From Utricularia gibba (Eukaryota > Plantae > Magnoliophyta): a stretch of 64,000 bases of DNA. Of the stretch, positions 10,123-57,000 are shown in pieces. The translations under genes were made by a program, and so were the position numbers. Within the stretch, counting starts at the first letter, position 1. Each line of letters opens with the position of its first letter. The notes beneath the pieces are model-generated. The model saw only the letters and a program-made list of their open reading frames with translations. It ran no database searches and was not told the DNA's origin. The stretch spans positions 1,178,001-1,242,000 of the forward strand of contig NEEC01000011.1 in NCBI GenBank assembly GCA_002189035.1, written 5' to 3'.

Positions 10123-10190
10123 TGTTATGTTGTTGGATTTGTGAGCATGTCACTGGCTGCATAGAGTAAGAAAAGGGTAGGAACTCAACT
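10123..10190 (-). repeat. LTR fragment homologous to 15788-15850
   Basis: TGTTATGTTGTTGGATTT(G/T)TGAGCATGTCA..TAAGAAAAGGGTAGGAAC occurs at both 10123 and 15788; the second copy adjoins a PBS. Confidence 0.7.
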
Positions 10191-12145
10191 AGAAAAGAGG
10201 TGAAATTGGATACATTACTAGCAATACCAGGATTATTAAAGGAAGTTAAAGAAGGCTCAGAAAAGATGATTTGTGACTACCCAATCTTAACTATAATACT
10301 AGAATTTAGGTTGTTTTTCATAACGTGATCCATTGTCATCGAAGTGGGTAAATATGTTAATAAACTATAAATAATGCTCTATCCAAGTGTTTTTGTCTAA
10401 CATAGTTCATAATCAAATAGATTCAAAATTTAGTATATAGTAAACAAGCTATGCTACTATGCATGCATCCATACAACTCGGAGAAATTTGGTTGATCACA
10501 GAACCCCTATTGAATTACTTCATCCCCTAAAATAAATAAAAGAGTAGTCATGTTTTTGAATTTTAAAACAAGTCAAAACCATAAAATATAACAAGATAGA
10601 ATATAAAGAGTTTATAAAAGTAACTTGAAGCATATTGTGAGTTCCCAAAATTATCTTTTACTACTTATCATGACCATCCAATCTTAACACTACTATCAAA
10701 TTAAGATAGGTGAGACGAGACATAAGGTGTCCTTGCCCATGGTTCCATGCTCAGGAGATCCACCTCTGATCATAGAACCACAAACTCAAATTATAAATAA
10801 CATATCTTATCATATATTTCTTGCATAACCTTCATACGTTTTAACCTTCCATTTGTACATGGTGCCTCATATATGCATGGCATATTAGCTATAATGTCCC
10901 TGGTAAAATCACGTTGCTAGAGATATGTGTCCATACCTCCTCCATTGATTCCTAAATTGTTTATCACGTAATACATAAAGATACATACCGCACAAGCTAC
11001 AATAAAAACATGACATCTCAAAAGCAATAGAGGTGATTATTCTTAGTAAAGAGAATCATATTTTTGAGACTCAAAAATAATTTTCCGAAACAACATGAAA
11101 TAACTTACTCCCTTTTACAATTTTTAAACAATGTAAAAAGTTTCAAAGAGTAGCCAAAATCACATTCAAGATAGTGGAAAATCAAGCACCAACACCACAT
11201 AGGCACATAAGTTTGCATAAATTAGTTTCAAGATAAACAAAACTTCAAAAGCAATCATCCTATTTATTTGACACCTTAGACTCCAAATCATCTTTAACTC
11301 TTCATTCACTTTAGTTATTGTAACCTTTCCATCCAACCTCTTCTCTTTACCTTTTTAAAACTCGAAAAATGAGTGAAATAAACCTAAATTTCATTATGTA
11401 TATTCCCTTTTACACCTTATCTTTATTTTACGTGCCACAACAAGTGGCATACATATAAGATGAATATGTGATGCATATGCAAGATCAACATGTGGCACGC
11501 ATGCAAGATCAACATGTGGTACCACCTCATGGTTATACTTGGATACATCTGATTAGTTGGGTCATAATCCATACATAGACGTCATCCCCCATCTTTCTTT
11601 GGGATAAGAATAGCTGGGGCATAGAATGGTGGGGTGTTGTTCTCTATCCATCCCTTTGCGATAAAAACTCATACTTGATTTTCGATCTCATTTCTATGTT
11701 TTTTTTGGATCCAGTCATCAGATGATTTTTGTGATCATAGAAACAATGGAGTGATTACTCAATGGGTTCTTCAAATATCGATTGGTGCTACTCAATCAAT
11801 CCTTTCATTATTTATCTCCAGAAATTGAAGTCTACTATCAATGTAACTCTAAGTTATCTTGCGAGGGGGTTACTCAGGGTCTAGTACCCTTGAATTCGAT
11901 GTTTTTGATTTCGGTCTATAAATGTCATCTCTTGTTGTTTGAAATCCCATGTTATTGGTCCGACCATCCTGAGTCAATCATACCCCAAAACTTGTGAGAA
12001 TCCAACCAATGACAATAAATGGAGGTTCATGACGAAATGATAACTGCCAATCACTAGTGGAATCGTTAGAAAAGTCTTGGGCAGGAGAGTGATTCCCCAT
12101 GTCCTATCATGGCCCTCATCCTCTTTATGTGAGAGGTGAGCATTT

Positions 12146-14701: not shown

Positions 14702-16181
14702 CATTTCTAGCTTTTGTGCCACATACTCCTTCAAAAAACTATGATTACTCTCTAAATCTAACAACAAGAGAAGTTGGCCTCTCATATTGACTTCTACGAG
14801 CATCAGCTATTCTGTAGAAGATTGGTTCGATTGTCCGGTGAGAGAATTGAGTAAGACTCGAATTTCTACCTCTACTTTATTGTCACTTTCTGTGAACTTG
14901 ATTAAAAACAATTTCTTTAACTTATATCTATGGACTAACCTTTTGTCAAAATGAAAATAGAGGCTTTTAGCCTGCCTTTCCTCAAACTCTTTCTGAGGTA
15001 ATCACCTAACAAGACGTGAAGAGCATTTACTACCAGAAGGTTGTTTTCCATCAAATTGATCCCTTTTAACTTCCAAGTTTTCTCTTCATCTTCATGTACC
15101 CCTCTCCCCCTCTAATTTTTCAATTGTCATCATTGTTACTAGATTGCTGATCTTGCCTTCACATAACATGGTTGCAAGACTCATCGCATCTGTTGTGTTC
15201 AAGGGGTTTCGTAATTTGATTAACATCAAGATTTGTGGTTGGAGACTTCCTAGATAAATCCGCGACTCGTGTTCCGGATGAAGATTTTCTATGGTAAGAG
15301 CAATCTCCTCTAAAAGTTGATTATAGTCCTCTAAATCCTTATCTATCTTCAGATGAGTCAATCGTTCGAGTGATGAGCCTCAATGTCACAGTCCAAATCT
15401 TAGGTTGCATTCTTATTTGAAGCTCGAGTTGTCCCTTTTGAGTTTCATAAACCAGCATTGTGGAATGCCTTCTAATTGTGCTGCCATGACTCATAGCTTA
15501 TCATCTTCTAAGGTTTGGTGATACTCAAAGATGTGTTCGCAATGATTAATCCTTTCAGTGGGTTGGATATACCATTGAGCTTCAGAATCTCTAGTTTCAT
15601 CATTTTATAGCCGTCCTCATGGTTCCCGTCATTGTCTTTAAACAACATATAGGTTGTTTAAAGCATTCCATGTTCTCAAAGCATTTTTCCATGTCGCTCA
15701 GATATTGGTCTATTTTATGTTGCATCTATTTCAGGACATTCATTAACTCTTTCATCCATGGGATCTAAAGTTGCTCTGATACCAAGTTGTTATGTTGTTG
15801 GATTTTTGAGCATGTCATTAGCCCCGTAGAATAAGAAAAGGGTAGGAACACATCCAGATCATTCAAGATGGGTTGAGGAATTCCACACTCTTCTTTCTAC
15901 CTATTTTGAAAGAAGATAACAAAAGTGTGTTGATTTTCAAAAACTACACCTACTGTTCCGAATGTCTTTCATATAGGACATTCTTGAAAAAAGTTAGCAT
16001 TAGGCTCTACTTCCAGGTTGGTTATTCCTTCCTCCTTGTATAGACCTTATCTTGTAGATGGCCCTAGTTACTTATCTGGTCTCCTTCCTTAGATGCTATC
16101 GACTCTATTGGGCAACTAGCAATGCTACTGTCTCATTTGTTTCCTGATCGGTGTTCATGCTATTTCTAGTGGGAGTCTTGA

Positions 16182-19100
16182 TGTTGTTGTTATTGTTTTG
16201 CTCCTTGGCATTCATCACATCTGTCCATCTCTCCTGATCTCATGAAACTCATTATTGATTAATGATAACACACATTTCATTAGTGTTTTTAAGTTATAAA
16301 ATTGATATGTTTAATGATAAAATTATGTATTTTAATTATGATTTTTAATATTTTATTAATTGTAGTGTTAATTATATTTTTATGCATAATATTAATTAAA
16401 TCATTGATTTAGTCTATATTATGATTTCTAATATTTTTTCAAGTGTTAGCAGCAGCATTATGGATCATATTTAGCTAGTTTATGAGCACAATTCAATGGG
16501 GCACAAGACACAAGGAGGAGACATGATTAATATTCAGTCGTCTACAGTCTGCAGATTCAGGCTAGGAACAGTACAGATGTCAGGAATAGTGTACTGACCT
16601 TGGAAAAAGAAAAGAAAAGAAAGGAAGATATTTTTTGGAGAGAGGAGATGGAGGAGAACATGATCAGACCCTAGAAGGGGGAGGAAGAACATGAAAGCAA
16701 GAAGATGAAGTCGATTTCTCTAGAAGAAAGACCAAAGACTTGAAGAATAACATCAAAGATCCAATTCAGTGCTACTGTTCTGAGTAGTGAACAAGAGTAG
16801 ATCGCGAACAAAACACTCTACTTTATCTTTAGTTTGCTGGACATTTCGTTACTTTGACGGTTGCTTTACAATGTCTTTAATATTCTCTTCAATTTATCTT
16901 AATGATATCATGCTTTATCTTTCATATATGAGTAACTAAAATCTTAGGGATGCTTGAAGAAGTAGAATGATGATGTGGAGGCTAGGGTTTATAATATGCT
17001 TTGTCATTGTTTCTTAGCATTTGTTTCTATCATTCCATGGGTAGACCTAAGGAGAGGTAAGGAACAAGTAGCTTCACAACTCTGATGCTTGATTTAGAGG
17101 CAGACCAACAAATCCATACAGGGATAGTAGGTATGTCTAGGGTAGAACCAGTGGAACGGGGTAGACCTAGTTCTGTATACTTTGCATGCAGGTAGACCTA
17201 ATTGCGGGGTTGGTGATGATATTGTGGACTATATTAGTTGAAAACATGATGAATAACTCGGTTAGACTTAAGTTATTTGGAATTGTGAGTATAGTAACAT
17301 AGTAGATTAAGTTAGACATCTTAACATCATATCAACTACACACCCTTAAGACATCTTAGTATTACTCTGAGTTAGAACGAGTACTTGTTACCTTTAGCGT
17401 TGAGACCTGATCTTGTTTACTGAATTTGTTTACTACTGTTAGTTTGAGCTTAGACTAAGAACTATTGTCACATCGAATTTTGCATCACGAAAAACACATT
17501 GCAAGCACAAGCTCCTTGTAATCGACCCTGAATTCCACTTTACATTTTGTGTTTAATTTATATCTTATGAGAATTAGGGCTTATAAATTTATTTGATACA
17601 AAATTTCTATTTTTACAACGACATTAGAAAATTTTTTCGTTTATCAATTAAAGACATTAGAGTTCATTACACTCCTCACATTGAAGTCAATATTCATTTT
17701 CGTACTATTAGTTAGACATTGTCTATTTATTTATATTGTTGTGCCAATGTAATCATCTTGTTTTACAATATATTGTTTATTATATATTGTTGTATCAATA
17801 TCCAAGTTTTAAATTTTCCTTTTGTTTACAAAGTAGCAGCAAAGCACGATAGTTAGGTTTTTGTTATTCTTATTCAACAAGTTGCATTGAAGCTTCGTTC
17901 AATCATGGATACTGCTCAATCAAGTGTTATGTGGAAGTTCAATGGCAAGGACTGTACTATATTGGCTGCTCAAATGATTTCTTATCTCCAAGCAATGAAA
18001 CTATACTAGACGGTTAATTCCAACCTATCTAATCCTCTAGAAAAAAAAAACCTCTAAAGCAAGCAAAAATAAAGGGTGGAATAGAAAGGACAAAGCAAGA
18101 TTCCATCGATTCTAGTATGTAAGAAAAAAGTGTTATCAGAGAAAATCACATTTTGAGAGTTATTGTTTTTAAAGGTCAGATGCAGATTGCACAGTATGCA
18201 ATCAATTAGGTCATGTGGACAAAGTATGTAAGAAAAAAAATCGATTACCACAAGTTTAGGCTTCTGTTGTTTGAGTAGTTAAAGATGGTGGCACTGAAAG
18301 CTTATTTGCTACCACTTACTCTATCTGAGAATTTCTAGAGGCAAGCCTCAGATGGAAGGTTCTACAAAATATGAGTTTCTATTTGCAGGAAATATTCTAA
18401 GATCCAAAATCATTCCACATGCAAGTTGGCTGGTGGACTCTAGTGCTCTACTCATATGATTGGTGATGCAAAATGCTTTACAATGAAGTACTCGTAGACA
18501 CCAAGCATAAGGCTTGGAGATGGTGAAACGCTAGAGGTCATCACCAAAGGTTCAATTCTAGTGCAAACACCAAAATGAATTCTGGTGCAAGTACCACAAT
18601 GAATTGAGAGATATGAGGATGTTTATTCAGTTCCTAGACTCAACATCAACCTATTGAGCGTTAAAAATTTAATGAAAAAGGATTCAAAATCCTTTATGGA
18701 GGTGGAATATGCATAATCGTAGATCTGTTAGGAGCTGAGGTGATCAAGATATCAGTTGTAGGAGATAATTATCATCTGCTCTCACCCATGATGTTATTGA
18801 GTTAGATAATGTTGTTACGGCTTTGAATCACTCATGATGATACAAAGTTTTTGGCTATATCAGTTATAATACTCTGGAGCTTATGTCCAAAAACCAAATC
18901 TACGGAGATCTACCACAACTTCACTCATATGTCATGCTTAAATGTGCTATTTGTCTACAAGGTATGACGAAACAAGCCTCTTTTGAATGACTTGGAGGCA
19001 GCAAGTATTTTGTAAGCTTTATTGATGATATATCCAAGTACTGCTGGGTTGTCTTTATGAAATACAAGAATTAAATTCTAGACAACTATATAAGCTTCAA

Positions 19101-38364: not shown

Positions 38365-41063
38365 ATGGAGCAGACGAGTTGGAGTAGGAATGCACCTTTG
38401 TTTTCCTGGCCATGGGGGATCTTGGAAATTCCAAGGCAAATCCACATTTCTCTTCATTGTTGTCATTCCCGTTCTTGTTTTGGTTCTTAGTGCCCAATCT
38501 GATTAGCAGTGTTTGTTTGTATGCAGTATTTGCTGTATGGTCCTCTGATTGGAAAAGCACTTTATGGGTTGTACAATGGGAAGCTCATTGATGAAGCCTG
38601 GTGTTGGCATGTTCTCATTTTGCTTATTCTCAGAGCTTTTGTTCACCAGTTTTGGAGCTCATATTCTTGCATGTATTTTGTCAATCGTACACGAAGAATC
38701 AATGAGAGCGGCTATGAGTACAGCCAAATCGACGCAGAATGGCATTGGTAAATGATTTGAACTTTGTTAAGTTGAACCTTTAGCGGAACATTATCTTTTG
38801 TTATTGCTTACAGGGATAACTTCTTGATCCTTCAAACTGCGGTTGCTTCATCACTCTTCTTGAGTTTCCCATCCCTGTTTCAGCTTCCCCTGTGGGATCT
38901 GAGAGGAATTTTCTGCGGCTTCATACTTCATGCATTAATATCAGAGCCCCTCTACTATTGGCTCCACAGATTGTTGCATACCTCTGATCTGTTCGAAAAG
39001 TATCACTGGCTTCATCATAGCTCTAAAGTTCTTCATCCATTCACAGGTAATGAACGAGAAACTCCTCACTAAATGATGACAGGTGTGAGTTTTTATTGCT
39101 GATTCTTTTTTCTGAATGTTCTGTTGATGCAGCTGAGCATCTGACCTTCTTTGAGCATCTGCTACAATGTGTTGTGATTGGAATTCCGATCATGGGAACT
39201 GTTGTCATTGGGTATGGCTCAATAAGCCTGATGTATGGCCATCTTTTGGTTTTTGATTTTCTTCAGTGTTTCCGGTATTCGAATGTTGAAATTTTCCCTA
39301 GCCAGATGATTGCTGCTCATCCTGTTCTCAAGTATTTCATCTGTACACCAACGTGAGATATTCTTCTATGGCTTTGCTTGAATTATGATCACGATTTTCT
39401 TGTTATGGAGCAGAAGAAATCGAGTTTGATATGTTTGTGTTTGCTTAATGTTGCAGATATCACGCACTTCACCACTCAGAGATGGATAAAAACTTCTGCT
39501 TGTTCATGCCTCTGTATGATGAAATATGGAAGACAACAAACACAAAGTCATGGGAGCTTCATAAAGTGAATGATTCACGGAAAAGTGAGTTTCTCTTATT
39601 CATATGTCAACATCTACGAACTGGAATTCTCTAACTCTTCACAAATATTGAAATGGCAGCTAGCCGAGTACCGGATTTCGTGTTTCTAGCTCATGTTGTT
39701 GATGTTATGTCGGCCATGCATGCTCAGTTTGTGTTCCGGTCCTTCAATTCTACATCCTTCTGCGTTAGGTTCTTCTTGCTCCCACTGTGGCCAATTTCAT
39801 ATTGTGCAATGATCCTGATATGGGCAAAGTCAAAGACATTCTTGTTCTCCTTCTATTATCTCCGTGAAAAGCTGCATCAAACATGGATTGTACCAAGATA
39901 CGGCTTCCAGGTAAAGGTTTTCATCTTCCGCATTTACAGAAAAACATGAAATCAGCCAGCAAATCGGATGCCCCTTTTTGCAGTACTTCTTGCCTTTCGC
40001 CAAAGAAGGCATCAACAAGCAGATAGAAGATGCGATCCTCAAGGCAGATAGGCTTGGAGTTAAGGTCATCAGTCTTGCTGCTCTGAATAAGGCAAGGTTC
40101 CTTTCTGTTTCTTGCTTTCCAGGATTTTCCATGGCGGATGTCCTCCATTTATCGAAACTATGGAGAATTTGACTGAGAAGCTATTTGATTGCAGAACGAA
40201 CCTCTCAACGGAGGTGGAGTACTTTTCACAAATAAGTATCCAGACCTTAAAGTGAGAGTATGCCATGGAAACACCCTTACAGCTGCTGTGATCCTGAAGG
40301 GAATTCCTCAAGATGCCGATGAGGTTTTCTTAACCGGGTCAACTTCAAAACTGGGAAGAGCCATCGCAATCTATCTTGCTCGTCGAAAGGTTAAGGTTAT
40401 GGTAAGAGCTGGAGCACCTAAACGATATTCAAAGTCATCCAGCTTTCAGAGATATTCAAAGTGTCTGATGTTATTTATTCCATCGTAGATGCTCACGACG
40501 TCTTCAGAGAGGTTCATGAAGATCCAGAAAGAGGTGTCGCCGGAGTTCCAGACGTATTTAGTACGAGTTACCAAGTATCAGGCAGCCAGCAATTGCAAGG
40601 TAACGAGACATGAGCTTAGCATAGTGTACAGACATCTGCAACTCACATATTGCTGTCCTCAGACATGGATCCTTGGTAAATGGGCAACACCACAAGAGCA
40701 ATACGCTGCTCCTCCAGGAACACATTTCCATCAATTCGTTGTCCCTCCGGTGATCCAGTTCAGGCGAGACTGCACGTATGGAAGCCTTGCCGCGATGAGA
40801 TTGCCCGATGATGTTGAGGGACTGGGCTCCTGTGAGGTAAACGCAACCCACAATTCCTACTTCGCACCATTAAGATCCGGTCGAGTTACCATCTTGTTGT
40901 TTTTCAGTACACGCTGGGTAGAGGAGTGGTTCACGCCTGCCACGCCGGAGGGATGGTTCATTTCCTGGAAGGATGGCAGCATCATGAAGTCGGAGCTATA
41001 GACGTTGAGCGGATTGATCCTGTTTGGGAAGCTGCTCTGAGACATGGCCTTAAGCCTGCATGA
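38365..41063 (+). CDS. CER3: ECERIFERUM3/WAX2-like very-long-chain alkane/aldehyde biosynthesis protein
   Basis: Exons: 38365-38435, 38527-38747, 38814-39046, 39133-39352, 39457-39584, 39660-39910, 39984-40091, 40195-40401, 40489-40599, 40663-40836, 40908-41063. His boxes HRLLH, HWLHH and HALHH; [19 protein letters not shown]; [10 protein letters not shown]; [12 protein letters not shown]; [12 protein letters not shown]. These match CER3 rather than CER1. Two GC donors; -1 frameshift in the G-run at 38414-38418. Confidence 0.93.
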
Positions 41064-41360
41064 TCATCTTCTACAAAGAGATATGGAGTTGATTTCGGAT
41101 CGAATTTGGATTCGGAGCTTCTCCCAGGCACTGGTATGGGAGTGCACCGATGTCTATCGATGGACAAAATTCCATTCCACGTATATAACGTATCCACCAT
41201 TGTTGTGTTCAAATCGATAGATGAAGAAGCACAGCCACTGGTTTCATGTGCCCATAAAAGTTTCCACCATTGACGAGTAACAGTTGCTCCTGAATTCTCG
41301 ACGTGTGCTCCTCTAAATAGACACGCCTCCCGAGCGTTGGCGTCGTCAATTTGAAGAGCC

Positions 41361-42170
41361 ATGATGCCGTGCCTCTTGTTGGTTGCCTTCTTCGTTTTTT
41401 TCCGGTCGATCGCAGCCTTTAACATCACAGCAATTCTTGAAAATTACCCAGATTTCTCAACATTTAACAGCTTTATTTCTCAGGCCAAATTGGCATCTCA
41501 GATCAATGGTCGTCAAACTATCACCGTTCTCGCCGTCGCCAATGGCCCCGCTGGTCAACTCTCCGGCATGCCGCCGGAAATGATGAAGGGCATTCTCAGC
41601 ATTCACGTTGTGTTGGATTATTACGATATCCCCAAGCTTCAGAAATTGTCTAAAAAGACCGCGATCCTGACCACACTGTTCCAAAGCTCCGGCTTGGCCC
41701 GGGGTCAACAGGGATTCCTTAACGTGACTATTGAGTCAGGGGGTAAAGTGGCGTTCGGCTCCGCCGTGGCTGGGGCACCTCTAGGGGCCGATTTGGTGAG
41801 ATCCGTCGACTCGCAACCCTACAATATATCCGTATTGGAGGTGAGCAGCTTGATTATTCCACCCGAATTCGATGGCCGCGCCACAAATTCCACCACTTCT
41901 CCGCCAACTCCAAACGCGACCCAGTCGCCGGCACCATCGGCAGCGTCACCCGCTGCGGCGGAGGTTCCTTCCTCGGCAGATACCCCTGCGGTGGATGACT
42001 CCCCGGCTCCCACGGCGGCTTCACCGGTGGGTGATGCCCCTCCGGCTGACACGCCGGAGGCCAGTGCCCCTGGGAGTGACAGTCCGAGTAGCAGCGGCGG
42101 GATTCTTGGGGGTGGATTCACGTTGGCGTTGGCGTTGGCGGCAGAGTTGGCCACTCTCTTCAAAATTTGA
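41361..42170 (+). CDS. Fasciclin-like arabinogalactan protein (single FAS1, GPI-anchored; FLA3/FLA5/FLA14-like)
   Basis: Intronless 269-aa ORF: signal peptide, AFNIT..YPDFSTFN, ITVLAV, HVVLDYYD and QPYNISVLEVS FAS1 motifs, an AP/SP/TP-rich AGP region and a hydrophobic C-terminal GPI signal. Confidence 0.92.
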   Translation: MMPCLLLVAFFVFFRSIAAFNITAILENYPDFSTFNSFISQAKLASQINGRQTITVLAVANGPAGQLSGMPPEMMKGILSIHVVLDYYDIPKLQKLSKKTAILTTLFQSSGLARGQQGFLNVTIESGGKVAFGSAVAGAPLGADLVRSVDSQPYNISVLEVSSLIIPPEFDGRATNSTTSPPTPNATQSPAPSAASPAAAEVPSSADTPAVDDSPAPTAASPVGDAPPADTPEASAPGSDSPSSSGGILGGGFTLALALAAELATLFKI

Positions 42171-43287
42171 GCTTCTCGATTATTTATAATTTTTGAGTAT
42201 TTTTTTTTGAATAAAAGAATTTATTTTTATCCTTTTTTTTGTTAGAATAGCACAAAATTTTGAAAATTGGTGATTTACCTGAATTATTCGGTTACCTAAA
42301 TAATTTGCTAAGAAATTGGAGACGTCTGCGGCTGCGGAGATAAGTTCGTGGGCGAGAGACATATCTTGTGGTTGTGTGTGGCGGTGCACCGTGGCGTCGG
42401 GGAAGGGAAGGTTCCCCAAACATCCACGTAATTTTAGGGGAGCATAAGAGACGCTTTGCGTTCACATTTCTCTTCCGAGCGCCCCATTCGGTTAAACTTT
42501 CAGCCACTGCCGTGTTCTAGGAATTCGGTTGGCCATTCTAAGGTCTCTCTTCTTTCTCTGAGCTAAAAAGCTTCCGTCTAAGGGTTCCTCTTTTTTTTCC
42601 ATAAAAATTTATCCCAATTACGTTCGGCAATATGATTTCTATCTGGGTTTTCGTTGCTTTCCCCGAATTTTAGGTGGGGTATTTTTTTTTCGCTTTAGAA
42701 TGTTAATTCATGAGGAAACTCGGAGACAAAATTTCGCGTTTCTTATGTTTGCCTTATCTTTGCGTTTGCGCAAGTGCTTCCCTTTTGCATTCTTTATCTA
42801 GCAATTGCTGTAACTTCACAAGGAACTATATTTGAATGGTGCCACAGCTTTCATTCGTTCTGTGACGGTTAATCTGTTCAGTTGATTAGGGAAACTAATT
42901 TATAAAGAACTCAGCGTTCATTTTACATGTTTGGTCTTTTCATGTTTCGGTGCTGACATATTTGATTTGTGGATTCTTCTTTTCTGATAGCGGGTTGTGG
43001 GTGTTTATGCTAAAAGTAAGTTGCTGTCTTTTCACTGTTTTTTGAAGTAAGCTTACTATCTTTTGTTGAATCTTTCATGCTTCTTATGTTAAAGGTTTAA
43101 GAATATCTTGTAGTTCATGTTAAATCCTCCTGAAATGGAAGTCTTATTGAGATGACAAGGTCCTAGATTTCGGGCATACCCTCACTTTGAGTCTTTTCCC
43201 AACAGTTAGCTGTTACTTTTTTTTGGTGGATCCATTTATCTTATGTCTATTATTCTGATTATTGAGTTGCTTGGCAGATTCTTCAAT

Positions 43288-46200
43288 ATGGCGTACACAA
43301 TATTTCAATCAACAAATTTGCCTTCTACTTTTGGCTACAATGGACTGTTTGAGGCATCTACAAAGAACAAAAAGGCTGCGACAGCACTTTTATGCTCAAG
43401 ATCAGCTACTTCTAGAACATGGAGCTTCTGTGGATTGCGTGGAGTTAATGCCTTGGACATGATGGTGCACAAAAGTGGCCAGCCATTGCAGGAAAAAGTA
43501 GCAGCTATTACCTCCACCAGGCCAAGAATAAACTCAAGAATGGCACCACGTGCCATGTTTGAGCGCTTCACTGAGAAGGCCATTAAGGTCATAATGCTTG
43601 CACAAGAGGAGGCAAGGAGACTCGGCCACAATTTTGTTGGAACGGAACAGATCTTGCTAGGACTTGTCGGTGAAGGTACTGGGATTGCGGCTAAGGTTCT
43701 CAAGTCAATGGGAATCAATCTTAAAGATGCGCGAGTTGAGGTTGAGAAGATAATAGGGCGTGGTAGTGGATTTGTTGCTGTGGAGATACCTTTTACTCCT
43801 CGTGCTAAGCGTGTTTTAGAACTGTCACTCGAGGAAGCCCGTCAACTTGGTAATGATTTCATCTTTTTTGGTTCTTTTTTTTCTGTTTGGTATGATTGAA
43901 TTCGTACTTTCAATGATTAAGAAGTAGATTTACTTTCTGATTGTATTCATCGTTGGAGATATGGCTGCAATGACCCGTTTTGTTTTTGCTCTGTTCCTCC
44001 CTGATCTTCACCTTCCTGAATCAGTCACATACAGAATGCCTAGCTTCCTTGATGCTCTTTATATTTCGAATTTTCTCAGGCCACAATTACATTGGGTCTG
44101 AGCACTTGCTGCTGGGATTGCTGCGTGAGGGTGAAGGTGTGGCAGCTCGCGTTCTTGAAAACTTAGGGGCGGATCCTAGCAACATTCGAAACCAGGCACC
44201 TCTGTCTTCTTTTCCCACTGGATAGTGATTCTATTACGTGGGCATATTTTAAACAAGCTTTCTGGCGATCAGGTTATCAGGATGGTGGGCGAAAGTGCTG
44301 AGGCTGTGAGTGCTGGTGTTGGAGGGGAAGCTCAGGCAACAAGATGCCTACCCTTGAAGAGTATGGTACCAATTTGACGAAGTTAGCAGAAGAGGTAGTT
44401 CTTAAATTGTACTTCCTTTTCAAAGATATGAAACTGATCTCCTTATTGGTGATCTTCTCTTTGTTTAGGGCAAGCTGGACCCTGTCGTTGGAAGGCAAGA
44501 ACAAATCGAGCGTGTGACTCAAATTTTGGGAAGGCGTACTAAGAATAACCCTTGCCTCATTGGAGAGCCTGGAGTTGGGAAAACTGCCATTGCAGAGGGA
44601 CTTGCTCAGAGAATTGCCAACGGGGATGTTCCTGAGACTATTGAGGGGAAAAAGGTATTGCTCTAGGCGTTTTTTTTTTTTTTTTGATGATATTGAGGCT
44701 ATTAAGATCTATTTTTCCTATCAAGTGATGGGTATTAGTTAGCCTTTTCTTAACCAATACTTTCTTTCCAAAATTACAGGTTATTACACTTGACATGGGC
44801 CTTCTTGTTGCTGGGACGAAGTATCGTGGCGAATTTGAAGAAAGATTAAAGAAACTGATGGAAGAAATCAAGCAAAGTGACGAAATTATACTGTTTATTG
44901 ATGAGGTTCACACCCTAATTGGTGCTGGAGCTGCCGAGGGAGCCATTGATGCTGCAAACATATTGAAGCCTGCTTTGGCTAGGGGGAGCTACAGGTACCA
45001 TTGATAGACAGTGTTTTTCCTGAATTATTTGTCATGTGTCATGCTAATCTACTATCCTGTGCTTCATTATTTTTTACTTTGATTTACTTCCAGTGCATCG
45101 GGGCAACAACTCTGGATGAATACAGGAAGCATATCGAGAAAGATCCAGCACTGGAAAGAAGGTTCCAGCCTGTGAAAGTCCCTGAACCCACAGTAGATGA
45201 AACCATTCAAATTCTTAAAGGGCTTAGAGAACGTTATGAAATACATCACAAGCTTCGTTACACAGATGAAGCGTTGGTGGCCGCAGCTCAATTGTCTTAC
45301 CAGTATATCAGGTGACAAAAAAACTCATTGCAATTTCATTTGTTGGTGCATATACTTGGTCTCTGTTCCTTTTTTTTTCAGTAGGCAATATTCTTGTTCT
45401 CATTTTGAAATTTTCATTTTTTTGGTTTTCTTTGCTTTAAAAATATTCTCCATTGCTGTGTTTTAGCGACCGTTTTTTGCCTGATAAAGCAATCGATTTG
45501 GTTGATGAAGCTGGTTCCCGAGTTCGACTCCGCCATGCACAGGTACATGCATTCATGTGCAGATGGCAAATGTTATCTTTGCTGCGTTTTTATAGTTTTA
45601 TCTTTTCCTGTGCCAGTTCCCTGAAGAAGCAAGAGAACTGGAGAAAGAGCTTAGACAGATTACCAAGGAGAAAAATGATGCAGTCCGTAGTCAAGACTTT
45701 GAGAAGGTGGTTGGCATCCTTCGCATGCATAAAGATGTTCTGATTCATGAACCTCGGATCTATTTGTGCATTTTCTACTCAGCTTTTGTTGGTAATTGAC
45801 TCTTTGGATATCCAGGCTGGGGAACTTAGAGACCGTGAAATGGATTTGAAAGCGCAAATATCCACTCTTGTGGACAAAAGCAAAGAGATGACCAAAGCAG
45901 AAGATGAAGCAGGCGATGGAGGTCCTGTTGTCACAGAAGTCGATATTCAGCATATTGTCTCTTCTTGGACAGGAATCCCAGTGGAGAAGGTGTCGACCGA
46001 TGAATCTGATCGCCTTCTAAAGATGGAAGACACCCTTCACAGACGGGTCATTGGTCAGGATGAAGCTGTGAAAGCCATTAGTCGTGCAATTCGCAGGGCT
46101 CGCGTGGGGCTTAAGAATCCTAACCGCCCCATTGCGAGCTTCATCTTCTCTGGTCCAACTGGAGTTGGGAAATCTGAACTTGCAAAAGCACTTGCAGCTT

Positions 46201-46997
46201 ACTACTTCGGCTCTGAGGAGGCCATGATCCGGCTTGATATGAGTGAGTTCATGGAGCGTCATACGGTTTCGAAGCTAATAGGGTCGCCACCTGGTTATGT
46301 TGGTTACACAGAAGGTGGACAGCTGACGGAAGCTGTTCGTCGGCGTCCATACACGGTTGTGCTATTTGATGAAATCGAGAAGGCTCATCCCGATGTTTTC
46401 AACATGATGCTTCAGATTCTCGAAGATGGGAGGCTCACGGACAGCAAGGGTAGAACCGTGGATTTCAAGAACACCCTTCTCATCATGACATCGAATGTTG
46501 GAAGCAGCGTCATTGAGAAGGGAGGAAGGCGGATTGGCTTCGACCTCGACTATGATGAGAAGGACAGTAGCTACAACAGGATCAAGAGCTTGGTGACGGA
46601 GGAACTGAAGCAATACTTCCGTCCTGAGTTCTTGAACAGACTGGATGAGATGATCGTCTTCCGGCAGCTGACAAAGCTCGAAGTGAAGGAGATCTCTGAA
46701 ATCATGCTGAAGGAGGTGTTCGACCGGTTAAAATCTAAGGACATTGAACTCCAGGTGACAGAGAGGTTCAAGGACAGAGTGGTGGAGGAGGGATACAACC
46801 CAAGCTACGGTGCCAGGCCTCTCCGGAGGGCCATCATGAGACTCCTGGAGGACAGCATGGCTGAGAAGATGCTGTCTCGGGAAATCAAGGAAGGGGATTC
46901 AGTGATCGTGGATGTGGATTCTGAAGGCAATGTGATAGTCCTGAATGGGAGCAGCGGGACGCCACCCGAGCCCGCACCAGAGCCAATGCTTGTGTAG
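43288..46997 (+). CDS. CLPC1: Chloroplast ATP-dependent Clp protease ATP-binding subunit ClpC (Hsp93)
   Basis: Exons: 43288-43849, 44080-44195, 44273-44394, 44469-44654, 44780-44994, 45094-45311, 45467-45542, 45617-45706, 45816-46997. Transit peptide, then [32 protein letters not shown]; Walker A GEPGVGKT and GPTGVGKS; Walker B LFIDEVH and LFDEIEK; [12 protein letters not shown]. Two -1 frameshifts in G-runs (44324-44327, 44982-44986). 5'UTR intron acceptor at 43277. The C1 versus C2 assignment is not resolvable here. Confidence 0.95.
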
Positions 46998-48322: not shown

Positions 48323-51300
48323 TGACAGTTTATGAGGTACAATATCTCATCTTCAAATCGTTGACATTAGAACAAATGTCATATGTTGAAAAAAAAATGT
48401 TGTAAAGCCACAAAGTAGATTCAAAAGTTATTACCCAGTATAGCAAGTTCAATGGATATTTATAAACAACAAACTATCCACTAGTTGACCATTGAGAAAG
48501 AGTTTAGTGGGCTTCAATTGATCGATCTAATTGAGTTTTCCAGAGTAATGTTGAGTACTGGCATTTGATCAATCCAACTATTCTTCTACTTCATTCTTGT
48601 TACATCTTTAGGAGGAACTTGTACATGATTACAAAGCAAAACCCTTCATACTCAATCATGGATGTAGCATAGTTAAACACGCTCCCTTGCTATGAAGTGT
48701 TGGTGTAGGGCATTGTTTCATTCCAACTTTATCTCTCAAATTCATCAATGTGAATACGCTTGAGTGCATGGTAGCAGACTCTGATATACTTACTTTTTCC
48801 GAATTGAGTTGGGTTTTCTCCTAAGTCAATTGCAAATTTGTTGACAATCCATAGGGTTGTCACTTTATTGATTGATATATCAAGATCTTCTAATATTTTC
48901 TACAACCATATTACATGTTTAACAACTTCAACTCCAATTATATATTCTTGGATGAGAGTGCAACAACGTCTTGTTTCCTAGAAGCCCAACTAGATGTCCT
49001 ACACCCAAATGTAAACAAATATCGAATCATGCTCTTTGAGTTCTCAATCCTTCCTACATAATATGAGTCAATAAAACCCATTAGATTTATACTTATATCT
49101 TTCTTGAAAGCAAATCCATAATCATTGGTTGACTTGAGACTCGATATTCAACAAGAAAGTCCATGTGCTCCTTGATAAGTCATCAACCACTCTTAAAAAA
49201 TATTTGGATCCTTGAAGTGTGACAACATTATATAATCCCCATAAATCACAGTGTATAAGATGGAAAAGGCACAATGAAATCGAATGACTTGGAAAAAAGG
49301 CTAATCTATGAAACTTGACGAATTCACATATATCACATGGTTGTCCAGAGAGACTACAACCAACTATAAAATGTTTTGCCTTATTTTCATATGGATGTCT
49401 CAAACGACAATGTCATAAAAGCGTAAAATTTAAACCATTCACAGAGGCACAAAACAGAGATAATTTCGACCATTTATGATTTACCAAATTACTCAACGCC
49501 AAGGGATCAGGATGAAATGGAGCCTTTTATGTAGCAGCAAGGAAATGAAGCCACCAAGATTCACTATCCAACATATATAAGCCATCACGAATATGTCCAA
49601 CAGCTAGTAATTTATGGGAGACTTGGTCCTGCATCACCCAATGATTATTGTATAGATTAAAAAGGACATTCATATCCTTCAGCATATACCTCACGAATAG
49701 AAGATTAAATATAAAGTTGTGAACGAATAGAACATTGGATAAATGCATATCATTCTTAAGTGAAACATTTCAAAGACTCTTAACCCGTATAGATAAACCA
49801 TTTGGTAAAGACACAGTGACACAGTCAACAACACCTATAACTTGAAAATTGTGCATGAAGCATGTGATATGAGTAGTGTCTACAGAGTCAATAACCCATT
49901 CCCAAGGTTCACAACTAAAAGACAGATCAATTTTGCTAGTCATCAATAATTCAGAATGTAAAATACCTACAAAGTGGTGGGTCATATTGGACATATGGAC
50001 TTGAGAATCATAGCCGGTGAAAGATGATGGCAAGTACAATTGTCAAGGTCCTTGATTTGCAAGAAGCTGCTCAACTCTTGTTGTATGATGTGGAGGGAAG
50101 TTTCAAAGCCAATAAAAAGCATATATGTGTCATTCAATTGTGTGTCCATGCAATGTGCCATGGAATGAGAAGTCATTCTATGATAGTATTGAGCCACCAT
50201 GTTCCTATTTGTAGAAATACCCATCAAAACTTGAGTGGATTGAGAGTAACAACCAGCATGAGTGTAATGTGGAGAGTAGCCATCAATGGGAGTAGAGGTT
50301 TGATGATGGAAAGGGACACCGAAAGATGTATTAGTCTTCTTTTTGTTCCACTATGATGGGTAATTCCCAATGAGGAGATAATGATTTTTACACAAGTATT
50401 CCTACTTCTTACAATAGTCATAGTAACGACCATCTTTCTTTTTCACATTTCCTGTAAATGAGTTATTCATAGAGACATAAAATGCAGATTCATCATGTCT
50501 CCCATCATGTGACTTAGCACTCATGGCAGCATTTGCAAATATGTCTAATGGTTTCTCAATGGTAAGGCCATTCATAACAATAATTTGATTTTTCGTCAAC
50601 TCAAACTTCTCACTCAAACCACGTAAAAAGTGAATCAACTTAGTAGGAACAAAGATTTTATCAAAAGGAATAACTGTCTCGCAAGAATCACATTTCATCT
50701 TAGGAGTAACGATATCAAGATCTTTCCATAAACCATTCAATCTAGTATAATAATCAGCAATGGTCATATCACCTTACTTCAAATGATAAATGCCATGCAG
50801 GAGTTGATAAAGCAAACTATTATTAAGATATCCATGATGATTTTGCGAGGTAATCCACAATTCTTGTGCGCACAAAGCACCACTAAAGCTTGCAACCAAT
50901 GATTTTGAAATAGAACTGAGTATCCACAATTAAATCATGCAATCATTAAAAATCCATAAATTGTAACCAGGATTAATGACAAGAGACCAAGAAATATCTC
51001 CATTGATAAAACCTAAATTATTCTTTGACCCTAAAGCCAATATGGCAATTTCTTCTCCATTCAAAATAAATCATAATTGTGAGAGGAGAATTCACAAGTG
51101 CAATGTTAGGATGTTCAAAACCACTCATAACCAATGGATTTGATTGTTCTAAAATAATAGGAAAACCTAATTCTGGTCCTTACAAGGTTTCATCACTCGA
51201 TGTCATTTCTACACGTAGCAATTGCTCACCAACAAGTCGGTTCTTTCTTTTGAGATGTCTCCACGCTCACTACACCATGAACAATTACGCTACCAGCGTT

Positions 51301-54300
51301 GAGAGTTGGCCAAATGGAAGGAAACATAAGGTAGTTCCATGAACGGTGAATCGCAAAAGCAAAAAAAAAAAAAAACAACGTTCATGCACATTTATGCATG
51401 TGATAAATTGTGCAGTACAACTAGAAGTGTAGAAGTTGTACTGCATAATAGTAATAACATTCGTTCTTCCTTCCAAAGTTCCAATGTCTATTCAACAAAA
51501 TGCTGCTGCTTCGTTCATCATTGAGTTCCAGGTGGAGAGCATAATCCAAGTTATCTAATAATGTTTTGAAGGGTAGAAGACATCCATCAATTGCTTATTG
51601 GATGGGAACTGAGGAATATGAAATCCTCATTTGTATTTCTCCCGTACAATATAGCAATCTATTTCAATATGTTTGGTCCGTTCATGAAATACCAAATTAG
51701 TAGTAATGTGAATAGTAGATTTTTTGTCACACCAAAGAGGAATCATGGCCAAGCTACGATATTCTGCCTTTGCTGAATACTTTGACACTATGCCTTGCTT
51801 TTTTGTTTTCCAGGAGATCAAACATCCTCCTAACATGACACAAAAACTTGTGATAGATTTCTGGGTGAGGGAACAAGCTCCCCAATCCAAATCACAATAT
51901 CTATCGAATAGAATGAGTTCCCTTGTTGGATAGAGAAGACCATGAAAAATGAAGTTAACAAGATAGGCAACAATGTATTTAGCAGCAAGCCAATGCTCAA
52001 GAGTCGGTGCATGCATGAATTGAGACAACTGCTGAACTTAAAAGACAATATCTAGATGCATAAAACTCAAATAGAGCAGTCGACCAATAAGAGCCTAGTA
52101 TTCATTTGAAGAGAATAAGATCTCAATATAAGATGATGGCCCAATATCTTTAATACTAAATTGAGCATGTAAAGCTTGTTTCAATTTGTTGATGGCAAGG
52201 AGAGAAGGACCAACTAGGAGAATGTCATCACCATAAACCGCTAAAGCAAGAAACGTGGTTGCAGTTTTCTTCATAAAGAGACATGAATCGGATAAGAATT
52301 GTTTAAAATACAATGAGCTAAGAAAACCATTGTCTACCTACTTGCTTTAAAACATAAAGTGATTGTTTGAACTTGCATACCTAACCGGCGTTTACATGAT
52401 ATACCGGAGGTGGTTCCATGGAAATGTCTTCGTCAATGTGATCGTGGTGGAAAGCACTATTAATATCTATTTGGTGTAGATGCCAATCCGGTTTCGCCGT
52501 CAGAGCAAGCAAGATTTGTATGGTAGTAATCTTGGTCAAAGGCGCAAAGCGCATAGTGAAGTCCACACCTTCCACCTAAGTGTATCTTTTAGCCACAAGG
52601 CATGCCTTATATCTAGAATGATACCGTTAGGATGCTTTTTGATTTTGAAGATCCATTTGCAACCAACAGTCTTTTTTCTAGAAGGTAGTGTCGTCGTTAT
52701 CCAAGTGTGGTTATCCACCAATGATTGAATCTCAAGAGTCATGGCATCTTGCCACACCTGTATCTCTTTAGCATGCTCATAAGTAGGGGTTCCTTCAACA
52801 TGAAGACTTGAATGGGGTTTGGAATCCTTAACCTTTAATAATGCAGTTTGGAGTGCAACATAATCCAGTTTCCAATATAGAGCTCATCGTATTCTAGTGC
52901 TCCTTTGGATGAGATCATTACTCATGCTAGGATGCTCTCTCAAAGACTACTGGTCTGCGTCATTACCTATAGCATGCTCATTGGAAAAATGGTGACCTGA
53001 AGTGGGCACACAATTTTCTAATTATTGAGACTTCATAGTAAGTGTGCCACTAGAATGCTCACCACTAGTTTCATAACCTACATAAATAACGTTTTCAAGA
53101 CTAGCAATAGCTTGAGGACCTGCAGCAATAATGGAAGGATGGAGATAGTCAGCATCATAATGGTCATCTAGACCATTGAAATTGTCATCAAGATCACAGT
53201 TGTCATTATCAGTTAAGAATGACAAAACAATATCAAAATTCTGAATGTAATCATCAACTCCCTTCCAAGGGAAAATATGCTCATAAAACTTGACATCCCT
53301 ATTAATAAAGATTTCCTTTGTAGTTAAATCATAACTCTTATAGTCTTAATGATCAATGGAATAACCCACAAAAATGCATTTTCTGGTACATGGTGTCAAT
53401 TTATCTACTTGTGGGTTAGAGACATCTGAGTAGCACAAACAACCAAAAACACATTAGTGATATATCAAAATCCATAATCATTGGTTATATTGAGATACTT
53501 TATGACTTGTTTTATAGCATCCATGCGTGTCTTGTGAGATTTTCTCAAATACCTAGAAAAATAGCTCATAAAAGACAGATATTAGGTCTAGTAGTAGATA
53601 AATATATAAGTGAATTAATCATACTATTTAATGTTTTTTCAACCACAATGTCTTCATCATTTGCTAGATCAGGTTGCAAGTAGACTAGTCGACTTTGCAT
53701 TGCTCAAATTATACTTCTTGATGATGTCTACCGTATATTTTTTTTTGGCTCAAGTAATTGTATTTTGATGAATGCTTAATCTCTAATCCAAGAAATTAGT
53801 CCATCATTCCCAAATCAGTCATTTCAAATATAGTCATAACTTTTTTTCTTGTCACAATAGGTGATTGTTGTTGCTTGTAAAGAGTAAGTCATTTACATAT
53901 AGTGATACAATGAAGTATGCTCCTTCCTTCATCAGTGTACATAGAATTGTGTCATTTTAGCTCCTTTGAAAATCCCTAGATTAAAATTGTGAAACAATTC
54001 TAGTATACCAAGCACGTGATGTTTGTTTAAGGCCATACAAGGCTTTATGGAGCAAAAGGACTTTTCTTTTCTATCCTATTTAACAAAGCTTGGTGGTTAT
54101 TGAATGTATACTTCTTCTTTTAATTTTCAATTTAAGAAAGTACTTTTAACATTTGAATGAAATATATCCTAATGATTGCAAGCCACTAAATCAATTAGCA
54201 GCTTTATGGTGTACAAGCATGCAATAGGAGTAAAGGTGTCATTGAAGTCAATTCTAACTACTTGTGAATACCCTTGAACAATCGAGCGAGCTTTCAACTT

Positions 54301-57000
54301 GTTGACAATTCCGTCTAGATTTGATTTGGTGTGAAAAGTCCACTATTATCTTCCAGTTGTTAGGTTTGAGAATTAATTTCCATGTCTCATTCTTTTCAAT
54401 GGACAGAATTTTAGATTTCATTGCTACTTTGTAATTAGGATCTTCTTAGGCTACATCCTAAAGTGCTGGTTCTTTTGCAGATAAGCATTTCGCATATATC
54501 TTGCTTATATCTCTATAACCCTCTACAAGTACTTCCCCATTGTTTTATATCATTTTCAGGAGGCTCTACAGGTTCAATTTCAACTTTCTGCTTAACTTGT
54601 CCAAGTTGTTGCTCCTCATCCAATTGAGCATCATCAGTAGTTTTAAAGGATTCTTTAAATATGTCATTCCATGAGTATGAGGTAGGAATAGTTTCAAAAG
54701 TCCGATCCCAACATTTTTTCTCATCTACAAGAACATCTTTGCTCAAAACTATTTTCTATGTTTCCAGATCCAACACTCTATATGTCTTTGAGATACTACT
54801 ATAACCCAAGAAGATTCCTTTTTCAGCCAATTTATCAAGTTTTCCTTGTCTCTTCTCTTTTGGAACATATATAAAACAAAGACTCCCAAAGACTATCAAC
54901 TGATTTACTTGATAGCACATCGATTCACAAGGTAAATCAAGGTATTTACTGCTTCATCTCAGAAGTAAATTGGTAGGCTTTTCTAAAAAAGCAGACATCT
55001 AGTCATGTTTATAACTATTCGGTTTTTTCTTTTCAAAGTCCCATTTTGATGAGGTGTGTACGGTGCTATAAGTTCATGCGCTATGCCCTGGGATATACAT
55101 AGTGTAACTAGCTCGATTGGTGAGTATTCAACTCTATTGTCTATTCTTATCTTAAGAATTTTTTCCATATTTTCATTTTCCATTATAGCCTTGAACTACT
55201 TGAAGTAGTTGAGAATCTGTGATCTATGGTGCAAAAGAAATATCAAATTATATTTAGTGAAATCATTAATAATTAACAGAAAATAATGGTTACCACTCAA
55301 CGTTTTATAGCTCATTGGTCTACACACATTTGAATGTACCAATTCCAGTCTTTTAGTGTTTTTCCAAGTTCATGTGTCAAAGGGAAATTTGTTTATTTTT
55401 CCTAACTGACAAATTAAACATATTTATTAGTGTTTCAATTTAGAGATTCCTTCAATTAGATTGTTTCTCTTCACGTTGAGGAGATTTTTCTGGTAAATAT
55501 TCCCGAACCCTTAATGCCACATATTTTCCATCGTTAGGCTACTCAAGCATGTATCTTTCCTAGTCTCAATGACAAATGTGATAGGATATGCAATTTATTT
55601 GTATAGTAAATATCTTAATCTTGTAGTTGTCCATTGCTAATAAGGTTATGGTGAGCTCTTGGAACAAGGAGGGGTTTTAGGGTTTTGAAGCAGGTGATTT
55701 CATATATCAAGTGATTATTGTAGCCACTATCTGAATACCGGTGTTTATCTTTTGTAATTGATTTTTCAACGGCAGATAAGCTAGCATGAGTTTTAGTAAC
55801 AACAAGAACCATATTACTCATATTTTGTGAAAGTTCATAAATCTCAACTACAGTCAATAATTTTTAGCTTTCTATTTTTCAAGCAAACCATCTCTTTGTC
55901 CTGTAACTTAATAGTGTATGCATATGTTCCAAGAATTCTAGAAGCAATCTTTTCTTCATGTTTCTCTTGCTCTTCAAATATGGTTATCCTTTGTACTTCA
56001 TCTCTCATGGTATTTAATAATTCTGAAGTTTGTTAGGCTTCTTGTGATGGGGCTGAATTTTGAGGGCATGCTTGTACATATTGTGTTGCTAACCCTCTTA
56101 TCTTCTACTATTCCTCTCAACAACTTGATCTTGCTTCTAGGTTTGTACGAGTTATCCATGAATGATTGAATAGAATCTAAGTTTGACATTTTCACCAAGT
56201 CGAATTCCTTCTAAAGATTCAACCTTTCTGCTTTCCATGAGTTTTTAATTTCAGAAAATTGTGTCTCAAGTATTTTCCATGCTTCTCTAACTATTTCATA
56301 GCTTATTACCATCAGGAAGACGTCATCGTTGAGAGAGCCATGCATAGGAGCAAGTGCTTGAGAGTTAATCATTGTTTCTTCTTTTGTGAATTCTCTAGAT
56401 TTTCCATCATTATCTATTGGTGAGTTTTTAGTCACTGTGTCATATAGACCCAAAGCTTGCATGTTTCACTTTATTTTTTCTACTCAGATAAGGTAATTTT
56501 TTCCATCCAATTGAGATGGTTGTAATGATATGAAGTTGTTGGTTTTGTTATTCATTTTTTTCCTACATGGTTAGTGAGGTAATGGTATATATGTGAGGTA
56601 GCGTGTTGTGTTATACTTGATTCATTAATTGAAATCGCTTTGATACCATGACAACGTTTATGCCATCGAAATAAAAGATTGATGAATTGAAGAAACTTGG
56701 AATGAGAACAAAGATCAGATGTTGAAGAAAATATTGTAAAAGCACATAGTAGATTCAAAAGTCATTACCCTGCAAAACAAGTTCACTGGGTATTTAAAAA
56801 CAACAAATTAGCCATTAGTTGACCATTAAAATAGAGTTTAGTGAGCTTTAATTAGTTGCTCTGATTGAGCTTTCCACAATAATGTTGATTTGGTCAGTCC
56901 AACTATTCTTCCACTTCATAATTGTTATATCTTCAGGAAGAGCTCATACATGGCAGCAGGGCGAAACCCTTCATTGATAATCTCGAATAGTAAATCTTTT
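48323..57000 (-). mobile_element. Near-complete degraded Ty1/copia (element B) hosting element A
   Basis: LTR pair 56649-~57000 and 48323-48679 (e.g. AGTAGATTCAAAAGT.ATTACC; AAACCCTTCAT at identical offset 315). PBS TGGTATCAAAGC at 56637-56648; PPT-like CAAGGGAGCG next to the 3' LTR. Gag 56462-55830, PR about 55750, INT 55300-54750, RT 54480-53470, RNaseH (SSWASRKQDVVALS..NPTQFGKSKYI) 49110-48750. Confidence 0.85.
49131..53467 (-). mobile_element. Circularly permuted Ty1/copia (element A, probably Ale/Retrofit-like) with one central LTR
   Basis: Order on the - strand: VFGCLCY..CIFVGYS (INT C-terminal part, 53460-53280), RT (52757-52095), RNaseH (52028-51560), candidate LTR 51520-51278, degenerate PBS 51265-51277, gag (51060-50402), PR (WVIDS, about 49870), INT N-part (CDLWG..VVDDLSRSTWTFLL, 49403-49131). 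Flanked by AAATCCATAATCATTGGTT at 49112-49130 and 53468-53486. Confidence 0.75.

Follow-up and report, generated by a model that had tools for sequence, protein, structure and literature searches.

A 64,000-nt stretch of the genome of Utricularia gibba (assembly GCA_002189035.1, contig NEEC01000011.1, positions 1,178,001 to 1,242,000 of the forward strand; referred to here as the window, with positions counted from its first letter) was found to carry an old Ty1/copia retrotransposon, the reading of which is interrupted at 53486 and picks up again as RNase H at 49130. Between these two points lies a 4,337-bp block of a second, degenerate Ty1/copia, the domains of which are permuted around a single non-coding region of about the size of a long terminal repeat (LTR), and the block is bordered on each side by an identical copy of 19 bp of host sequence. 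We consider it rather probable that a linear, circularly permuted piece of an already degenerate Ty1/copia, shorter than one full unit, entered the older element by DNA repair that did not involve integrase.

The host copia and the permuted block

The host was identified as a Ty1/copia element from an LTR pair (48362-48649 and 56698-56974) which encloses gag, integrase (INT), reverse transcriptase (RT) and RNase H in the normal order. The two LTRs are 81% identical (p-distance 0.19, Kimura two-parameter distance 0.23) and are the sole long repeat pair between 47 and 58 kb, and the coding sense of all retroelements from 48.3 to 57 kb is the minus strand. Pfam families identified in the host were, in order, Retrotran_gag_2, a weak rve, SH3_retrovirus (E=2.8e-17) and RVT_2 (E=5e-10). 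A 5-bp target-site duplication (TSD) was not recognisable around the host LTRs, which carries little weight at such age. The locus is made up of the following features:

56698..56974, minus strand: host copia 5' LTR, p-distance 0.19 to the 3' LTR
53487..56465, minus strand: host gag (Retrotran_gag_2), integrase (SH3_retrovirus) and RT (RVT_2), in normal order and heavily degenerate
53468..53486, no strand assigned: right 19-bp copy, where the host RT-RNase H linker terminates (..KYLNITNDYGF)
49131..53467, minus strand: inserted block of 4,337 bp, a circularly permuted, degenerate Ty1/copia without approximately 357 bp of the integrase core
49112..49130, no strand assigned: left 19-bp copy, the minus strand of which codes for TNDYGF of the host RNase H
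48659..49111, minus strand: host RNase H, the frame of which carries on from 53487 across one 19-mer
48362..48649, minus strand: host copia 3' LTR, forming a repeat pair with 56698..56974

In the host, the RT-RNase H linker (..KYLNITNDYGF) and RNase H (TNDYGFAFKKD..) were found to join exactly, apart from the 19 duplicated bp. Each of the two 19-mers falls on residues 1028-1033 of the reference copia polyprotein P0008 (described below), and the same register was obtained with a second reference, P0066; since both fall on the same host RNase H residues, a single continuous host element was split. It had been proposed in an initial annotation, made from the sequence alone, that excision of the block and one 19-mer would rejoin host RT to RNase H, and this was borne out by the mapping of both copies to the same residues. 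A derivation of the RT and RNase H pieces from two separate host copies is not credible, as it needs truncations with an exact 19-bp overlap. Filled or empty sites elsewhere were sought in a word search with a 69-aa host piece across the left junction, which gave no candidate.

Read along the minus strand, the block consists of the INT C-terminus (INT-C), RT, RNase H, approximately 0.28 kb of non-coding DNA, gag, protease (PR) and the INT N-terminus (INT-N). Pfam matches in the block were to SH3_retrovirus (53025-53345, E=9.5e-5) and RVT_2 (52384-52575, E=2.4e-12; 52098-52337, E=1.2e-8), with weak matches to Retrotran_gag_3 (50933-51070, E=0.0017) and gag_pre-integrs (49125-49412, E=0.11). Pfam left six of the ten block pieces without a family, and full-length references were sought by a representative search with a 136-aa RNase H piece, which gave 25,554 relatives at E<=0.001, the best full-length ones being copia polyproteins. 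The best full-length match, P0008, is a copia polyprotein of 1,218 aa with the domains Pol_BBD (171-246), gag_pre-integrs (302-350), rve (364-464), SH3 (524-596) and RVT_2 (719-959). An exact look-up of the 121-aa gag open reading frame (ORF) of the block found no record. The parts of the block, all on the minus strand, are listed below with the segments matched by P0008 in tblastn:

53259..53467: integrase C-terminal SH3-like part (Pfam SH3_retrovirus, tblastn and frame reading), its first residue aligned with P0008 aa ~530
52098..52883: RVT_2 reverse transcriptase, interrupted by stops and frame breaks
51450..52097: RNase H and pol C-terminus, P0008 aa ~975-1218
51232..51497: single LTR-sized non-coding region with approximate limits, starting TGTTGAA after a purine-rich tract and placed by geometry relative to the intact element L001
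51284-51295: candidate A for a site resembling a primer-binding site (PBS), TGGTAGCGTAAT, a 7/12 match at motif level
51220..51231: PBS-like candidate B, TGGTGAGCAATT (TGGT..GAGC), four bases fewer than TGGTATCAGAGC, at motif level
50405..51206: gag, with an ATG at 51206
49413..50042: protease/Pol beta-barrel region and linker, P0008 aa 171 to ~300
49131..49412: integrase N-terminus, comprising the zinc-finger region and ~47 residues from the start of the rve core, ending ..NIESQV at the equivalent of P0008 V410
53447-53259: tblastn match to P0008 aa 536-598
52754-51450: tblastn match to P0008 aa 705-1218
49898-49131: tblastn match to P0008 aa 171-410

The tblastn map of the P0008 pieces shows that the permuted domain order is real; the order and the length of 4337 bp given in the initial annotation, which had also placed an LTR between RNase H and gag, were thus borne out by Pfam and tblastn. 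The block belongs to the Ty1/copia class, as a copia-type RVT_2, an SH3-like integrase C-terminus and RNase H are all present. A normal copia has the layout LTR-gag-PR-INT-RT-RNase H-LTR, with two LTRs and a 5-bp TSD, and the block departs from this in order, in LTR count and in the length of the duplication. It also carries two internal deletions relative to P0008, one of approximately 50 aa in the RT-RNase H linker and one of 22 aa in RNase H.

The source of P0008 is an intact element of 4,805 bp (L001, 3081-7885) which has identical 268-bp LTRs (TGTTGAG...TTCTACA), the PBS TGGTATCAGAGC and the TSD TTTAT, and in which pol terminates 37 nt within the 3' LTR and the gag ATG lies 2 nt past the PBS. 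The distance from the end of pol to gag aa 14 is 303 nt in the block (51450 to 51146), compared to 283 nt expected from the L001 geometry for one LTR and 551 nt for two. Judged by this geometry, the centre of the block would fit exactly one LTR plus PBS, and a two-LTR circle was ruled out because the central gap is too short (303 vs 551 nt). The LTR-sized region contains a T16 run and has an alternative 3' end at approximately 51301. The L001 LTR gave no alignment with the block centre, where 63 of 300 shuffles scored equally well. A true LTR had initially been placed at 51278-51520; one LTR-sized region is supported by the geometry, but geometry and motifs favour limits of approximately 51232-51497 or 51301-51497.

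L001 was also used for comparison of the two halves of the block. Its gag matched the block gag (51040-50678, 34% identity, E=5e-21) and had no match in the host, its pol was the best full-length match to the block's other half, and gag, PR-INT-N, INT-C, RT and RNase H of the block all match it. The shared nearest intact relative, together with the lack of an L001-gag match in the host, supports a probable single lineage for both halves, distinct from the host with its Retrotran_gag_2-type gag, while their derivation from one element is left unproven. The rank correlation of reference scores between the halves (rho 0.16, 14 references) was uninformative, because the references are truncated in differing ways. 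The loci of the closest representatives (P0008, P0009 and P0005) are from other species, and their best nucleotide similarity to the block was 124 nt at 69%, in RNase H. In addition, a 500-nt X4 contig (one of the sequencing-run contigs described below) with 93% identity to the INT-N of the block (49145-49233) was observed to read past 49145 into uninterrupted integrase (..KSLVCDHMQ..), which points to further copies of the inner family in the genome.

Junctions and age of the insertion

The 19-mer AAATCCATAATCATTGGTT has exactly two occurrences in the window (plus-strand search), at 49112-49130 and 53468-53486, and none of 100 shuffles yielded two matches. Only three direct exact repeats of at least 19 nt, at most 10 kb apart, exist in the entire 64-kb window, and the 19-mer pair is one of them; the remaining two are the start of an ordinary LTR pair and a 56-nt local repeat. 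Coding homology was found by frame reading to extend to the last base at both junctions, with zero filler bases. At the 49131 end ..NIESQV pairs with ..HHKSQV410 of P0008, while at the 53467 end IYH*CVFGCLCY pairs with Y530THLRSFGCLCY. Absent from the block are P0008 aa 411-529 (~357 bp), which make up most of the integrase catalytic (rve) core, and the length of the block equals one unit minus this segment. The identical 19-mers bracketing the block, and a break in integrase with 0.35-0.4 kb of the catalytic core gone, had both been described in the initial annotation and agree with these results. That annotation had also noted extra microhomology (TCTCAA) beside the 19-mer; a 6-nt match (TTGAGA) is indeed present at one junction, but it lies 3 nt outside the 19-mer, away from the join, and is thus unsuitable as simple annealing microhomology.

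No terminal inverted repeats (TIRs) were found in the block, neither end has poly(A), and for the inner element neither outer LTRs nor a 5-bp TSD could be traced, a second LTR copy being absent from the window. Ends within integrase, a duplication of 19 bp instead of 5 bp, and the absence of filler, TIRs and poly(A) together indicate that the insertion was made at the DNA level and independently of integrase, probably by DNA repair. LINE-mediated retrocopying was ruled out by the lack of poly(A) at both ends, and carriage by a DNA transposon or Helitron by the lack of TIRs and by ends that are in-frame integrase codons; reversed nesting, with the host inside the inner element, predicts another order and was also ruled out.

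Contigs (Logan; k=31) from four runs were placed on 48400-54300. Both junctions are covered in X1, by contigs 48400-50227 and 51713-54300 (1 and 5 mismatches, respectively). In X3, a different sample from the same study as X1, contig 48987-49325 spans the left junction with 0 mismatches. In X5, from a different study, a 201-nt contig (53321-53521) spans the right junction with 14 mismatches and a second contig spans the left one, its end being placed at 49161 by end distances (68 at 49093, 51 at 49110). X5 differs from the window by approximately 3-7% in host and block alike, with the junctions at 93-98% identity, and this equal divergence indicates that the insertion is older than the split of these haplotypes or copies. 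Misassembly, which the initial annotation had suggested testing with sequencing reads, was rejected, as contigs of three samples in two studies cross the junctions. A chimeric joining of two copia copies at a shared 19-mer is in keeping with the repeat-rich nature of the region, and the best-matching runs may be kin to the source data of the window; however, k=31 contigs cross both junctions in X1, the left one in X3 and both in X5, and a 19-mer is below the assembly word length and cannot cause such joins, so that an artefact of this kind is scarcely conceivable.

Further observations were made in these contigs. No X5 contig of at least 90% identity was found over the block RT and most of its RNase H (51739-52982), and one X5 contig links 51738 to 52983, skipping 1,244 nt, although one of its sides is just 24 nt long; a deletion within 51739-52982 may be present in the X5 haplotype or copy. 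One X3 contig begins exactly at 53468, the first base of the right 19-mer, and continues into the host RT flank. This start may be the sign, in a k=31 graph, of a second flank context (an empty-site allele or an uninserted paralogue), or it may be a coverage gap; X3 coverage near 53468 is approximately 5x, with the preceding 200 nt uncovered.

The age of the insertion was assessed relative to that of the host and to the decay of the block. If the duplication were as old as host integration (host LTR p=0.19), 19/19 identity would be expected with a chance of 1.7%, which argues against the birth of the chimera with the host element. Comparison with full-length references gave 10-14 in-frame stops in the block, or 1.3 per 100 aligned residues (consistent over five references), compared to 2.3-3.4 in the host. 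When the intact L001 pol was mutated in silico, 1.3 stops per 100 aa corresponded to approximately 0.11-0.16 substitutions per site, and identical 19-mers would be expected in only ~0.5-3% of cases if all block decay had followed insertion. A decayed block between identical 19-mers makes old genomic DNA a more likely donor than fresh cDNA; most of the decay probably predates insertion, with a donor that was already degenerate genomic DNA and not fresh cDNA. These timing arguments are moderate, not decisive, evidence.

Origin of the block

From these features we infer DNA-level repair, a degenerate donor and the form of that donor. The donor piece would have had the order INT-C, RT, RNase H, polypurine tract, one LTR, PBS, gag, PR, INT-N, and would have come from a molecule in which the 3' end of pol was followed without interruption by one LTR, PBS and gag; such a molecule is either a one-LTR circle or a tandem array with a shared LTR. 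The host RNase H coding region would have been opened with ends staggered by 19 nt or, alternatively, a repair polymerase may have resumed 19 nt behind its point of departure; fill-in would then have produced the 19-bp duplication, with both joins made directly, without filler and with at most 1 nt of microhomology. As the block looks much older than its insertion, the most likely donor is the genomic DNA of a copy that was already dead, for example a circle released when two LTRs recombined (the event reciprocal to solo-LTR formation) or a tandem element that was copied. Capture of Ty1 cDNA at breaks was reportedly described by Moore and Haber and by Teng et al., both in 1996. For Ty elements, the formation of circles by recombination between genomic LTRs is documented (PMC4751563), and capture of retrotransposon DNA at breaks is known from mouse zygotes (PMC4516963).

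Contiguity of pol, LTR and gag can arise from four sources, namely a one-LTR circle, a tandem complex element, linear cDNA that runs from integrase across the R-R (LTR repeat region) transfer, and template switching on co-packaged RNA, and a one-LTR circle is not distinguishable by sequence from a tandem shared-LTR array, run-on cDNA or in-particle template switching. A fossil of a re-inserted one-LTR circle, excised from an old copy by LTR-LTR recombination, broken within integrase and captured at a staggered break, is a tentative reading which we regard as somewhat doubtful. Re-integration of extrachromosomal circular DNA without integrase had been the initial interpretation of the locus: an integrase-independent permuted insertion with one LTR-sized centre stands, but the circular donor was not demonstrated. 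The same interpretation took the circle to be a normal by-product of retrotransposition. Such a fresh one-LTR circle, the dead-end product of an active element, broken in integrase and ligated into a double-strand break with the loss of ~0.36 kb, would give the permuted order, the one LTR-sized centre, a length below one unit, the non-LTR ends and the 19-bp duplication, and the active plant copia EVD does yield abundant one-LTR, two-LTR and truncated circles (PMC10462705). However, fresh cDNA of an active element should be near intact, whereas the block combines 10-14 in-frame stops, frame breaks and two deletions with identical 19-mers; a single cut in a circle cannot remove 357 bp, and circles derived from transposable elements (TEs) are generally held to be unable to re-integrate (PMC10462705). 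A circular topology as such is compatible with the block, but its origin as a fresh by-product is weakened by ~1.3 stops per 100 aa next to identical 19-mers and is considered unlikely.

A chimera formed during reverse transcription is to our minds equally improbable. Here, RT copying host-family RNA in a virus-like particle would have switched at INT-N to a co-packaged RNA of the other family, copied to the 5' end of that RNA, rebuilt one U3-R-U5 by R-R transfer, continued to INT-C and returned to the host RNA at a position 19 nt behind the point of departure, the composite then integrating with the host LTRs. This would account for the shared orientation, the one LTR, the missing integrase segment (by two independent switch points) and the filler-free joins. 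The polymerase and RNase H sites of retroviral RTs are spaced 17-20 nt apart, which is close to the 19-nt overlap. For plant copia, it has been proposed that shared-LTR complexes arise by template switching (PMC1950507). Against the chimera, the duplication would be as old as the host LTRs (p=0.19), in which case 19/19 identity is expected only ~2% of the time, and the stop density of the insert is about half that of the host; heterologous co-packaging and two non-homologous switches in one cycle are also demanded, and no 5-bp TSD is visible at the host LTRs, a weak point given their age. Serial ordinary rearrangements of a nested copia or tandem array, or host halves from different copies, appear far less probable still: plant genomes commonly contain nested and complex LTR elements (PMC1950507), and both elements are old with internal deletions, but the host halves meet at the same residue with an exact 19-bp overlap, deletions cannot create a two-sided duplication of host sequence, and the inner element has no trace of outer LTRs or a 5-bp TSD.

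Integrase-free repair with a piece of a degenerate copia is preferred on these grounds, and several points weigh against it. The age argument uses small counts (11 stops and one 19-mer) and assumes similar rates in LTRs and interior, and mobilisation of defective elements in trans leaves degenerate cDNA possible as a donor. The orientation of the block is that of the host, a 50% coincidence under DNA capture which is obligatory for a chimera formed at the RT level. The limits and completeness of the LTR, and the origin of both halves from one element, would depend on geometry and on a relative of 31-52% identity, and the TTGAGA match is left without explanation.

Other features of the window and comparison with known systems

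A ClpB/Hsp101-type chaperone gene lies at 40489-46997 on the plus strand, 1.4 kb from the host copia. Its 416-aa ORF (45747-46997) matches AAA_2 (E=5.9e-70) and ClpB_D2-small (E=4.1e-25), and its upstream exons may be represented by the ORFs at 40489-41001, 41361-42170 and 43243-43899. A further LTR retrotransposon was observed at 10122-15858 (minus strand), with LTR starts at 10122 and 15787 (72 nt, 86% identical, first 19 nt exact) and a canonical PBS complement, GCTCTGATACCA, at 15775-15786. No copia pol match was found inside this element, which may be non-autonomous or of another superfamily. A long inverted repeat (13372-13850 and 16982-17460) has arms of ~480 nt in several blocks, 74-88% complementary and 3.1-4 kb apart; it may represent a TIR element or foldback that overlaps the 10122-15858 element at its right end. 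A third copia pol fragment is present at the window edge (2-1789, minus strand), with 80 tblastn hits from the reference set and no nucleotide similarity to 47-58 kb.

The permuted block implies that plant chromosomes can take up retroelement DNA in which pol, LTR and gag are contiguous, via repair and not via integrase. Circles of LTR retrotransposons are abundant in plants and are usually treated as dead ends, and re-integration of plant TE circles remains undemonstrated, an open question (PMC10462705). The locus is a good candidate for such re-integration, short of proof; if the circle reading is true, TE circles are at times more than a dead end and are able to give rise to new, integrase-independent insertions. 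The exact junctions are available for genotyping across accessions, and a permuted order combined with a single LTR, non-LTR ends and a long duplication at the flanks provides a search signature, by which a genome-wide count could separate circle, tandem-array and template-switch origins. A caution also arises for LTR annotation and insertion dating, in that an LTR pair is lacking from the block and the insertion would be dated too early from the decay of the block.

Compared to one-LTR circles of EVD in Arabidopsis (PMC10462705) and of Ty in yeast (PMC4751563), the block is similar in that the 3' end of pol is connected to gag through what would be a single LTR and a PBS, and in that its length does not exceed one unit, truncated circle forms also being known. 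It differs in being chromosomal and linear, opened in integrase, ~357 bp short and accompanied by a 19-bp host duplication, with no circle observed. Tandem 'complex' elements, in which two internal regions have an LTR in common, are not rare in plants and have been attributed to recombination or template switching (Sabot and Schulman 2007, PMC1950507). They share with the block an internal-LTR-internal arrangement of one family in one orientation; however, they keep their outer LTRs, so that three LTRs are present with the outer pair around two internal regions, and the template-switch class has a 5-bp TSD, whereas the block has neither outer LTRs nor a 5-bp TSD, ends in integrase and has a 19-bp duplication. 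Descent of the block from an element of this kind, as a fragment or as a repair copy, is conceivable. Capture by template switching within particles of LTR retrotransposons (reviewed in PMC13317346) likewise places sense-oriented foreign sequence between an element's own LTRs, but the cargo here would be another copia, copied across its own R-R transfer, and the age indicators argue for an insertion younger than host integration.

Linear fragments are captured at double-strand breaks in yeast (PMC1976456), and break-captured filler DNA (PMC4516963, PMC1976456) has non-LTR ends, no integrase-type TSD and direct joins with little or no microhomology. The same was found for the block, with ends off the LTR termini, no TSD of integrase length and direct joins, although it is much longer (4.3 kb), its circular permutation runs across an LTR, the target duplication measures 19 bp, and it represents an old, fixed event in a plant genome. 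Among these systems, the block resembles break-captured filler DNA from a source of circle or tandem topology.

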